Virus record (IMG/VR): IMGVR_UViG_3300005859_000002
Coordinates: 1 to 40,729 of that record
Reading direction: 5' to 3' (one strand)
DNA: 40,729 nt
In this document: positions 3,268-39,424 of the stretch, piece after piece
Layout: the number at the start of each line of letters is the position of its first letter
Position numbering within the stretch: position 1 is the stretch's first letter
Program-made: the position numbers and the translations under genes
Notes under the pieces: generated by a model
The model's input: the letters and a program-made list of their open reading frames with translations, nothing else
The model's database searches: none
Told to the model about the DNA's origin: nothing

Positions 3268-3546
3268 TTACTCCTCCTTAATATGTTTCGACGATTTTCC
3301 AATTTCAATAGTTATATCGTTATACATTATGCTAAACCATATTTTGAATTGTAATATTTTATTAGAAATTTTCAGGTATCCGTATACTGAATTTTCTGTA
3401 TTCGTATATAGCAGTATTCTTGGTTTTTCTGTGAAAGTAAAAGCTTTACTTAGAACATTTATTATATCTTCTTCTTTCATACTTTTTACTTTATTTCTTA
3501 TTTCTTCTCTCCTAATTTGAGTTCTTTCTATTCTATCTGAATCCAT
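3268..3546 (-). CDS. Hypothetical protein
   Basis: 92 aa; GTCATA promoter motif near 3570 on the minus strand. Confidence 0.75.
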   Translation of the reverse strand: MDSDRIERTQIRREEIRNKVKSMKEEDIINVLSKAFTFTEKPRILLYTNTENSVYGYLKISNKILQFKIWFSIMYNDITIEIGKSSKHIKEE

Positions 3547-3696
3547 TTTTACCTAACTAATGTTATGCCTTATGACAGCTAAAAATAATTTTATTTTTAT
3601 AACTTTGAATTTAAGATACAGTTTCTTATTTTTTCTCTAGCCAATTTTTTGAAATAACAGAAATCTTTAAATAGGTCAGAATTAAATTATTTATTA

Positions 3697-3750
3697 GGCG
3701 TAGCGTCAAAAGTGAGGGGACTATCGACGTAGCGTCGTATGTCCCTGATT
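3697..3750 (+). ncRNA. Putative small structured RNA with k-turn (box C/D-like)
   Basis: GC-rich intergenic island about 24 nt downstream of TTTAAATA (3666-3673); two hairpins with CG-UAG-CG loops; GUGA...CUGA closing a GGGGAC/GUCCCU stem. Confidence 0.6.
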
Positions 3751-3801
3751 AATTTAATAAAAAAATATATATTTTAATTTTCAAGTTAGTGAGAAAATAA
3801 A

Positions 3802-4134
3802 TTATTTTTCTTCTCTCCATAAAATTTCTAATCCTTCAATTCTGTCGTATCTTATTCTTGCATTTTTTAATTCTATTTTATTGTAAGTATCTACTTTTCC
3901 AATTATAATTTCAATGTTTGAACTTGTCTTGAAGATTTGCAGAAAATTAAAATCACTATTTTCTATAATAAAATTTATTTCTATAGAATTTTCATAATCA
4001 GCAAAACTGAAACTTAATAATCTTAAATTGAAAATATGTATATCGTATAGACCATCTTGTTCTTTCCAATACTTGAAATCTAATTTATTTTGTTTTAGAA
4101 ATTCTAAAATATCTTTTCCATCTTTTATTATCAT
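3802..4134 (-). CDS. Hypothetical protein
   Basis: 110 aa; ATGA overlap with the thyX stop. Confidence 0.75.
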
Positions 4135-31823: not shown

Positions 31824-32888
31824 ATGCAGAAACCAATTTATTACGTTTATCCACAACATCATGATGTTTCATTCAAATTCGTAGCTAGAGAACATATAAA
31901 AATGCTAAAAGAAAAATATTTAGTTTATGAAATTCCTGCTTTATCATTTTATCAATTTACGCCTTTTAGAAACCCAATATCAATAATTCATCCCTTCTTT
32001 TATTCAATGTGGAAATGGACAAACGTGGAATTTTCATTTTTTAAAAAATATAGATCAAAAGTTAGCGAAATAATTGGAGTTGAAGTAGCTGATTCTGACA
32101 AAATTTCCGAAAAATTCGTAGATTATGCTAATAACCTAGCTGATAAAATAATTGTAAATTCGGAATGGTCAAAAAACGCGTTTAAAAATTCTGGATTAAA
32201 AATTCCAATTTATAAAGTTGTACATAATTTTAATGAAAGACTTCTAGCTGATGATAATGAACTAAAAGTTGATGATCAACTTAAATATATTGAAAAAGTC
32301 AAGAAAGAGAAGAAAATTAAGCTAATAATGATATCTCTTTGGCATTCAGATTTTCGAAAAGGAGCTGATATTTTTCACGTAATAGCAAAAGAAATTCAAA
32401 AAGAAAGAGATGATATTTATTTTCTAGTAAAAAGTGGCGGAGCTAGAACAGATTTTAAAGATATAAAAATGTTCAACTTAACAGGAAATACTGATTTTGA
32501 TAATATAATAAAAATGTATAGAATTTCAGATTTGTATTTATTAACTTCAAGAGGCGGAAGTTTTGAATTAAACGGTTTAGAAGCGTTCGTTTCCAAAATT
32601 CCAACGATTGCGACAAAAGACGGTGCATGGGAAGAATATTTTCCAAATGAGTTAAAAGATTTACTAGTTGAACCTTGTGATCGTCCAACTGTTCTTCCAA
32701 ATAATTCAATACATATCGGTCAAGGAGTTCAAATGTGTATAAATGAAGCAGTTGAGAAAATACTAAATGTCCTAGATAATTATGACAAATATAAATCTAA
32801 AATTGAAGAGTATTACAACTTCTGGATTGAAAATTTCAGTTATGAAAGTGTTAAAAAACAACTTTTTAATGCTTTAGAATCAAGCTAA
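31824..32888 (+). CDS. GT-B (GT4) glycosyltransferase
   Basis: RKGAD and TSRGGSFELNGLEA. Confidence 0.92.
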   Translation: MQKPIYYVYPQHHDVSFKFVAREHIKMLKEKYLVYEIPALSFYQFTPFRNPISIIHPFFYSMWKWTNVEFSFFKKYRSKVSEIIGVEVADSDKISEKFVDYANNLADKIIVNSEWSKNAFKNSGLKIPIYKVVHNFNERLLADDNELKVDDQLKYIEKVKKEKKIKLIMISLWHSDFRKGADIFHVIAKEIQKERDDIYFLVKSGGARTDFKDIKMFNLTGNTDFDNIIKMYRISDLYLLTSRGGSFELNGLEAFVSKIPTIATKDGAWEEYFPNELKDLLVEPCDRPTVLPNNSIHIGQGVQMCINEAVEKILNVLDNYDKYKSKIEEYYNFWIENFSYESVKKQLFNALESS

Positions 32889-38505: not shown

Positions 38506-38728
38506 CCCTGAAGCTATTTTCTTTTTTTTATTCCTCATTTTTCTCAACTTCTAAATAATTTTTCATAACTTTTTCTATCTCTTCATCTTTCTAACGCTTA
38601 GAATCAGCCTTAGAAATTCCTCTATATCTTCAAATTCTATAACATTCCTGATAAAAATAATTGATGAAAATAGAAACAGAAAATAAAAAATAATAAAATA
38701 AAAAGAAAAACTAAAAAAATAAGGAAAA

Positions 38729-39025: not shown

Positions 39026-39223
39026 TTCTTTTCCCTGATATATCGTCTGTCATAACAGATATATAAATCTTTCTCTATTCTTTTATCTTTCTATTTCACG
39101 CTATTTTTAACGTTTAGAACTAGCCTTAGAATTTTATATTCGAATAGAAATATTATAACATCACTGAAAAAAATTACCAATAACCCTACAAAAAATTAAT
39201 TTAAAAAAATAAAAATAAAAAAA

Positions 39224-39424
39224 TTAGACAAATGAAGAAATTTCTAAATAATAGATTCCGTCAAAATTATAAATTGTGATTTTTGTTCCGCCTATCTTAT
39301 CACTAAAACTGTAATATCCATTTGTCTCAGAACTTTTTTCAAAAAAATTTGAATTTCCCTGAAACTGGTTTAAAAGTTCTTTAAATTGTTTTTCTGAAAT
39401 TTTTATTGCTATATAGTGACTCAT
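39224..39424 (-). CDS. Small early protein inside the ITR
   Basis: GAGAAAGATTTATTAA promoter at 39456-39471, GAGGT RBS. Confidence 0.72.
   Translation of the reverse strand: MSHYIAIKISEKQFKELLNQFQGNSNFFEKSSETNGYYSFSDKIGGTKITIYNFDGIYYLEISSFV

Follow-up and report, generated by a model that had tools for sequence, protein, structure and literature searches.

A twin-hairpin element in rudivirus-like genomes: a probable new family of small viral RNAs with a putative L7Ae-binding kink-turn

The element and its locus

The IMG/VR contig UViG_3300005859_000002 (40.7 kb, analysed over its full length and called the window below) is the rudivirus-like genome, with 26% GC, of a rod-shaped virus of archaea that is uncultivated. 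One of its intergenic regions, 255 bp long (3547-3801), carries a promoter followed by a short GC-rich element that can fold into two hairpins displaying the same loop. From sequence analysis we propose that this element probably belongs to a new family of viral small RNA that may be bound by L7Ae, the universal kink-turn (k-turn) protein of the host. The features of the locus are as follows (coordinates refer to the window).

3660-3677, plus strand: promoter, with a GAAATC sequence resembling a B recognition element (BRE), the TATA box TTTAAATA (3666-3673) and the virus-specific GTC (3675-3677)
3697-3707, plus strand: hairpin 1, GGCG-UAG-CGUC, at the predicted 5' end of the RNA
3708-3715, plus strand: linker, continuing into the bulged strand of the putative k-turn (weak C helix at A3709-A3710; bulge at A3711 G3712 U3713; then G3714 A3715)
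3716-3746, plus strand: hairpin 2, with outer stem 3717-3721/3741-3745 and G3716.U3746 at position 3b.3n of the putative k-turn
3722-3740, plus strand: interior of hairpin 2, with a 3x3 internal loop (3722-3724/3738-3740), inner stem (3725-3729/3733-3737) and UAG loop (3730-3732)
3747-3750, plus strand: non-bulged strand of the putative k-turn (G3747 A3748; U3749 and U3750 pair with A3710 and A3709)
3751-3781, plus strand: A/U-rich 3' tail and probable termination region, with T-runs at 3772-3775 and 3778-3781
3268-3546, minus strand: 92-aa gene, left of the intergenic region
3802-4134, minus strand: 110-aa gene, right of the intergenic region and last gene of a leftward operon

The GC island (3697-3750) shares the highest GC content of any 40-nt segment of the contig (0.575; median 0.25). 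The segments that tie with it are all coding, and it is the only one outside long open reading frames (ORFs). A first-pass annotation, made from the letters alone, had described the island as free of ORFs, and indeed no ORF of at least 30 aa overlaps 3547-3801 on either strand. The sequence parts named in that annotation were all found in place: the promoter (GAAATCTTTAAATA at 3660-3673, GTC at 3675-3677), hairpin 1 (GGCG-TAG-CGTC, 3697-3707, with one G.U pair), hairpin 2 (GGGGAC-TAT-CGACG-TAG-CGTCG-TAT-GTCCCT, 3716-3746), and the AGT-GA (3711-3715) and GA (3747-3748) flanking it, with CTGA at 3745-3748. Within the 40.7 kb, GRCGTAGCGTC is confined to two sites, 3697 and 3726 (0.05 matches expected), and none of 100 shuffles contained two matches. 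Identical element sequence was assembled from five independent samples, indicating that the element is not an assembly artefact.

Conservation of the fold in related viruses

Homologues were sought in contigs carrying members of the 110-aa protein clusters (only four such clusters were found among 5.8 billion proteins) and with degenerate DNA patterns run against IMG/VR and the JGI metagenomes. Nine homologous loci were obtained, all on AT-rich rudivirus-like contigs. They form three sequence lineages:

the window
L010, L045, L050
L036 (the same as L054), L046, L053, L056, L047

The 54-nt core (3697-3750) could be aligned across the lineages without a single indel, whereas the flanks need gaps. 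The window differs from the other lineages at 13-14 ungapped positions of the core (approximately 74-76% identity); the adjacent ThyX coding sequence is just as similar (71-76%). No variant loses any of the 14 base pairs of the core. Thus the two-hairpin fold proposed in the first-pass annotation, which would have been undermined by a lack of structural conservation in relatives, is supported by changes that preserve it. The outermost pair of the inner stem changes from C-G to U-A, and the third pair is A-U in the window, G.U in L010 and G-C in L054; the core pairs thus show two double-sided compensatory changes with G.U intermediates. The stem of hairpin 1 is present in all lineages, its G.U pair being replaced by G-C, and in L010 it is extended by a fifth G-C pair. 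When the pairing partners were slid by 1-3 columns, pairing dropped from 85% to 31-41%, and 13-14 substitutions placed at random spared all pairs in about 0.1% of the trials (P ~0.001).

Fifteen of the 26 unpaired core positions are invariant, and 13 of these lie in the two UAG loops, in UGA (3713-3715) and in GAUU (3747-3750); the internal loop contributes the remaining two, A3739 and U3740. Variation is found in the linker, in most of the internal loop and at 3b.3n. The five positions preceding the invariant UGA read AAAAG, CUAAA, AAGGA or AAAAA, the linker length being constant at 8 nt. GAUU is present in nine of nine loci, and the sequence diverges downstream of it. The outer stem of hairpin 2 is also invariant.

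Folding with RNAfold, a check suggested together with the original annotation, recovered both hairpins on the plus strand with modest z-scores (-2.3 to -3.6). Hairpin 2 is the minimum-free-energy structure at 37, 75 and 85 °C. Hairpin 1 of the window is predicted to melt at 75-85 °C when it has no partner. Conservation without indels, fold-preserving substitutions, a conserved promoter (see below) and the lack of coding capacity are what the sequences show, and we are highly confident that the locus contains a conserved structured element.

Promoter, predicted start site and predicted 3' end

The first-pass annotation had assigned a dedicated promoter to the element. The combination of TATA box and GTC is a signature of this virus: TTWAWATNNGTC has eight matches in the window versus 1.6 expected, and six of the seven other copies are located 33-45 nt upstream of an ORF start, suggesting that it marks the window's own promoters. 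A GTC downstream of the TATA box has been described for the promoters of SIRV1/2 (PMC5569661, citing Kessler 2004). The element's promoter has the features of rudiviral promoters, namely a TATA-like octamer and a GTC 2 nt downstream of it, approximately 31-33 nt before the start. In the relatives GAAA, TTTAAAT and GTCA are invariant (nine of nine loci) and the following 19 nt vary, which supports the assignment. At leaderless genes of the window the distance from TATA to start is 31-33 nt, so the start was predicted at G3697 +/- 2. The spacing between promoter and hairpin 1 is fixed in all lineages, so in each of them the predicted start coincides with the first base of hairpin 1. A perfect copy of the promoter signature, TTTATATTTGTC, was noticed at 32784-32795 on the minus strand, antisense within a 354-aa ORF (31824-32888). 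There is no ORF start nearby, and the copy may be an antisense promoter or a chance match.

A T4-T5 run on the plus strand is found at +72 to +80 in all three lineages, pointing to an RNA of about 75-85 nt. The original estimate of approximately 54 nt therefore probably describes the structured core; ends at 3772-3775 or 3778-3781 are likelier. Read on the minus strand, the A-run at 3759-3765 is T7. The succession of an A-run and a T-run (e.g. A7-TATATA-T4; 3759-3775 in the window) is also kept between the element and the convergent gene in L010 and L054, and this zone looks like a shared bidirectional oligo-T termination zone.

With regard to the strand, the G.U pairs of the window and of L010 would read as A.C on the minus strand. 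A minus-strand T4-T7 run separates the convergent stop codon from the hairpin in every lineage, suggesting that the operon transcript should end before reaching the hairpin. The G.U pairs, these upstream minus-strand T-runs and the conserved plus-strand T-run favour the plus strand, and we consider it likely that the element acts as a plus-strand RNA.

The putative k-turn

A k-turn is defined as a 3-nt bulge followed by G.A and A.G pairs (PMC5061560). This layout is found here at the sequence level: the bulge 3711-3713, which ends in U, is followed by G3714 and A3715 facing G3747 and A3748, and UGA and GA are invariant in the nine loci. The pair at 3b.3n is G.U in the window and A.G in the other lineages; the invariant 5-bp stem GGGAC/GUCCC comes next. 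Natural k-turns with A.G and with G.U at this position are known; the A.G types fold in metal ions alone and the G-U types need protein (PMC4382518). The k-turn geometry put forward in the first-pass annotation thus agrees with the invariant UGA and GA flanks set against a variable linker. Its weak side is the C (canonical) helix, which had been described as a weak outer helix of two A-U pairs and indeed has only 1-2 A-U or G.U pairs. Hairpin 1, which ends 1-2 nt away, could stack on this short helix. Binding of L7Ae to this k-turn is a serious possibility, to which we give slightly less than even weight.

The tails of two relatives contain segments complementary to the bulged strand. In L010 UUCAUU (+58 to +63 from the predicted start) exactly complements AAUGAA of the k-turn 5' strand, and in L054 UUCAUC (+74 to +79) exactly complements GAUGAA. 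The A-to-G change in the strand is accompanied by a U-to-C change in the tail, the distances differ, and nothing comparable is present in the window. The complementarity may reflect a second pairing in competition with the k-turn, or chance in T-rich sequence.

In L005 (IMGVR_UViG_3300026885_000015) an unrelated GC-rich hairpin occupies the equivalent position (3426-3488, minus strand of that locus). It lies 23 nt downstream of a TATA box (TTTATAAA) and has the layout UGG-GA-GUGUCCG-loop-CGGGCAC-AAU-GA-CCA. Its internal loop places GA opposite AAUGA, with C-G at -1b.-1n, a 7-bp C helix on the hairpin side and a non-canonical (NC) helix of 3-4 bp. Judged by its sequence, this hairpin has the make-up of a textbook k-turn, in a topology opposite to that of the element. 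A T6 run follows on the opposite strand. The L005 hairpin is not recognised by the element's covariance model, and a search for relatives returned nothing beyond L005 itself. The occurrence of a k-turn-like hairpin at the same place lends independent support to the k-turn reading.

Distribution and genomic context

SIRV8-10 and ARV1 are the nearest cultured relatives of the window, matching it in short stretches only (approximately 70% nucleotide identity). The leftward operon encodes a 435-aa ATPase-like protein, a Cas4-like nuclease, a ribbon-helix-helix (RHH) protein, ThyX (PF02511) and the 110-aa protein. The element is syntenic: despite rearranged surrounding gene order, it is always found at the 3' end of this operon, after the 110-aa gene or directly after ThyX, and it faces away from a divergent 65-67-aa gene. 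Its place is in the variable left arm, at a distance of 3.7 kb from the end of the genome, a region in which the anti-defence genes of rudiviruses tend to be grouped.

Several related genomes lack the element. In L006, L064 and L065 the two convergent genes abut, in L008 and L009 another gene is at its place, and SIRV8-10 have neither the ThyX module nor the element, the equivalent junction being 52 bp long. A covariance search, proposed with the first-pass annotation and carried out with model R1, found the known homologues; no further copy was found in the window, the SIRV8-10 loci, L005, L006, L008, L009 or L064-L067. A blastn search of GenBank phage and archaeal-virus records gave AT-rich chance hits only, and the metagenome pattern matches outside viral contigs were GC-rich chance hits. 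No case of the promoter and hairpin 1 joined to a different downstream part was found. Strict co-occurrence with the divergent 65-67-aa gene was considered and rejected, as SIRV10 has a syntenic 63-aa gene (36% identity over the full length, non-significant by BLASTP, E = 10) without the element.

Some peculiarities of the contigs were recorded. The 110-aa gene is present in the window, L010, L005 and L006 and absent from L054, L046, L056 and L047. In the window the 92-aa gene (3268-3546) lies between the element and the 65-aa gene; in the relatives compared (L054:5117-5395, L010 and L005) it is within the operon, between the Cas4-like and RHH genes. The terminal inverted repeats of the window are offset (1-160 with 39088-39247, 84%; 150-212 with 38520-38582, 100%), and approximately 1.5 kb follows the right arm; rearrangement or incomplete assembly of the contig ends is possible. 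The left part of the 2.4-kb contig carrying L050 (L050:1-450, Ga0080006_1165939; 40% GC overall) is far more GC-rich, with a coding fragment similar to the C-terminus of an IS200/605 TnpB-like protein; either the contig is a chimera or an insertion sequence adjoins the viral genes.

Proposed function and alternative explanations

The reading that we favour, somewhat beyond even chances, is that of an independently transcribed, virus-encoded small non-coding RNA (ncRNA) that forms an L7Ae-type ribonucleoprotein (RNP) and displays its two loops to a second partner. Host RNA polymerase (RNAP) would start at about G3697 from the rudivirus-type TATA+GTC promoter and terminate at the T-runs some 75-85 nt further on, running towards the end of the leftward operon. 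The first 54 nt would form a 5'-terminal UAG-triloop hairpin followed by a two-tier hairpin capped by the same CGUAGCG sequence. At the base of hairpin 2 the invariant UGA on the 5' side and GA-UU on the 3' side would provide the 3-nt bulge and tandem sheared G.A pairs of a box-C/D-like k-turn, and hairpin 1 would stack beside the very short C helix. Host L7Ae would bind the kink and lock it, a step that would matter because the RNA is only marginally stable at the host temperature. The resulting small RNP would show two identical hairpin loops to a second partner, probably dimeric or with two sites. Since there is no single-stranded guide, the RNA would function through protein binding, as a scaffold, sequestering or regulatory RNA and not as a modification guide. 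Transcription, strand, 3' end, L7Ae binding and the existence of any partner are what we infer in this scheme.

A number of observations weigh against it. The C helix is weaker than in known k-turns (A-U/A-U in the window, A-U/U.U in L010, G.U/A-U in L054). The box-D-like CUGA, to which the first-pass annotation drew attention, is present in the window only, the relatives having CGGA. The invariant outer stem yields no covariation and is uninformative either way, the column-shuffle control for covariation reached only 24/500, and the phylogeny is shallow, with effectively three lineages, two of them close. Thermodynamics does not inform on the strand, the minus strand of the type-3 variants folding equally well or better. 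Because the element is missing from L006, L064, L065, L008, L009 and SIRV8-10, it must be regarded as dispensable or accessory. Finally, the two 11-mers are nearly identical within a genome (one mismatch in the window and L010, none in L054), as a pair of DNA sites would be.

This last point bears on the explanation that the element consists of DNA operators: two 11-bp imperfect palindromes (GGCG-TAG-CGYC, 29 bp apart) recognised by a dimeric viral or host DNA-binding protein, for instance the neighbouring RHH or winged-helix protein, which would control the back-to-back promoters of the intergenic region. RHH and winged helix-turn-helix genes are adjacent, rudiviral RHH repressors are known (SvtR; PMC5569661), and symmetric changes in half-sites can mimic covariation. 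However, operators would account neither for the invariant outer stem GGGAC/GTCCC, the constant size of the 3x3 loop and the flanking UGA and GAUU, nor for sites placed precisely at +1 and +30 of a promoter without a gene behind it. The palindrome is broken by the G.T states, and the absence of the motif elsewhere in the 40.7 kb indicates that it is not a regulon site. We hold this explanation to be quite unlikely. Slightly less so, but still unlikely, is a structure at the 3' end of the leftward operon mRNA (ThyX/110-aa gene), in which a GC-rich hairpin on the minus strand would aid termination or protect from exonucleases. The element is always 26-63 nt downstream of the last stop codon of the operon, L005 has a different GC hairpin at the same place followed by a minus-strand T6 run, and the type-3 fold is as stable on the minus as on the plus strand. 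Yet the T4-T7 run precedes the hairpin in every lineage, where archaeal RNAP should already have terminated, and past the hairpin that strand has no conserved T-run (UCACUUUU, UUCAUUUAG, UUCAUCCUU). The A.C mismatches arising from the G.U pairs of the window and L010 also speak against it, L006, L064 and L065 end the same operon without a hairpin, and the invariant, correctly spaced plus-strand TATA+GTC promoter and the UGA/GAUU would remain unexplained. The possibility raised at the outset, that the element serves only as a minus-strand terminator for 3802-4134, is thereby made less likely.

A longer antisense transcript over the 3' part of the 110-aa gene and ThyX, for which the 54-nt structure would be only a 5' stabilising leader, would fit the convergent orientation, the short T-runs (T4-T5) after the element, which may permit read-through, and the distance of just 26 nt to the ThyX stop in L054 and L056. 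It appears improbable because all lineages have a T-run at +72 to +80 and more such runs follow within 120 nt; moreover, the downstream gene varies with the lineage (110-aa gene or ThyX), so there is no conserved antisense target, and a simple stabiliser would not account for the invariant loops and GA motifs. Mimicry of a CRISPR repeat, that is, a solitary-repeat RNA anti-CRISPR titrating host Cas proteins, is the least credible alternative and we give it very little weight. Such RNAs exist in phages (PMC10651486), and the element is a viral, promoter-driven palindromic unit of approximately 30 nt in a variable genome arm. On the other hand, the hairpin-2 pattern gave only four chance matches, all bacterial, in 185,579 species-representative genomes, with no archaeal hit and no archaeal array, and in the metagenomes it turned up in the viral contigs alone and in no array (exact pattern matches only). 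Furthermore, CRISPR repeats of the Sulfolobales are AT-rich and unstructured.

Returning to the small RNP, a decoy or counter-defence role seems improbable; it would be compatible with the accessory nature of the element and with its place in the variable left arm. More speculatively, and still unlikely in our opinion, rudivirus-like viruses of archaea living in hot springs might possess a whole class of small k-turn RNAs by which L7Ae of the host is drawn into a viral RNP. Two unrelated sequences, the twin-UAG RNA and the L005 hairpin, would do so at one and the same locus, their hairpins sequestering or redirecting a host factor, e.g. an RNA-processing or defence protein. If so, archaeal viruses would have their first described example of host manipulation by means of an RNA. 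The first-pass annotation had suspected that small RNAs might have been noted in other rudiviruses; in Rfam and the searchable literature we found neither a structured ncRNA gene described for Rudiviridae or Adnaviria nor a k-turn RNA of any archaeal virus. If expressed, the element would be a compact, easily testable case in which an archaeal virus exploits the universal k-turn protein of its host, and it would open the question of what the duplicated loops bind; if it is only a terminator or operator, it is ordinary. In metagenomes of AT-rich archaeal viruses, RNA genes can be found by scanning for GC islands in combination with promoter motifs specific to the virus.

Comparison with known RNAs

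Several known identities were tried and rejected. ARAGORN found no tRNA or transfer-messenger RNA (tmRNA) in the window, and no Rfam family matched anywhere in the window at the gathering threshold; the only Rfam matches near the element were two junk H/ACA hits with E values of 6-10, far below the gathering scores. The element is not an archaeal C/D guide: its box C would be GUGAGGG or AUGAAGG instead of RUGAUGA, there is no C'/D', the box D CUGA is restricted to the window, and the interval between the boxes is paired as hairpin 2, leaving no single-stranded guide of ~10-12 nt. Rfam C/D models gave no match even at E <= 10. In this respect the original annotation, which had set the RNA apart from ordinary C/D guides, was right. 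An archaeal H/ACA RNA is contradicted by the internal loop, which is only 3x3 and nearly paired in the relatives and thus offers no pseudouridylation pocket, and by the lack of a conserved ACA. A bulge-helix-bulge splicing motif was dismissed, as the 3-nt stretches face each other as an internal loop and are not staggered by 4 bp, and a host-derived RNA was dismissed because the pattern scan of the species-representative genomes gave no archaeal match. A protein-coding function is not compatible with substitutions that follow base pairing and not codons. A 67-aa ORF (L054:6287-6490, minus strand of that locus; likewise in L046) runs across the element on its RNA strand and has been called as a gene. 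In the window it is not preserved, having an upstream stop and no start, and because of this lack of conservation it is probably a spurious protein prediction in the public databases.

A close structural parallel is the terminal k-turn of archaeal C/D small RNAs (sRNAs). In both, the base of the helix has a purine-UGA in its 5' strand opposite xGA in its 3' strand, the 3-nt bulge ends in U, and the terminal (C) stem is very short, as is common in archaeal C/D sRNAs; in the window the CUGA is exact. Unlike these sRNAs, the element has neither C'/D' nor a guide, its interior is a stable hairpin, and most members have CGGA. A single k-turn in a short stem-loop serving as a protein-binding site is also found in the 5' leader of the L7Ae mRNA in Sulfolobus (PMC5539422, PMC6298567) and in the 5' stem-loop of U4 small nuclear RNA (snRNA). 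Those are cis-regulatory or spliceosomal elements of cellular RNAs, whereas the element is predicted to be transcribed on its own from the virus and has an additional hairpin at its 5' end and its loop in duplicate. They differ also in that most members of the family have A.G at 3b.3n and are predicted to fold without protein; G-U or G-C at this position implies folding only upon protein binding (PMC4382518), and the window has G.U. Adenovirus virus-associated (VA) RNA, the Epstein-Barr virus (EBV)-encoded RNAs (EBERs; PMC4378190) and the RNA anti-CRISPRs of phages (PMC10651486) belong to other domains of life, with other polymerases and motifs and without sequence or structural homology to the element, but they are alike in being small, structured, promoter-driven viral RNAs, devoid of coding or guide capacity and presumed to act by binding host proteins.
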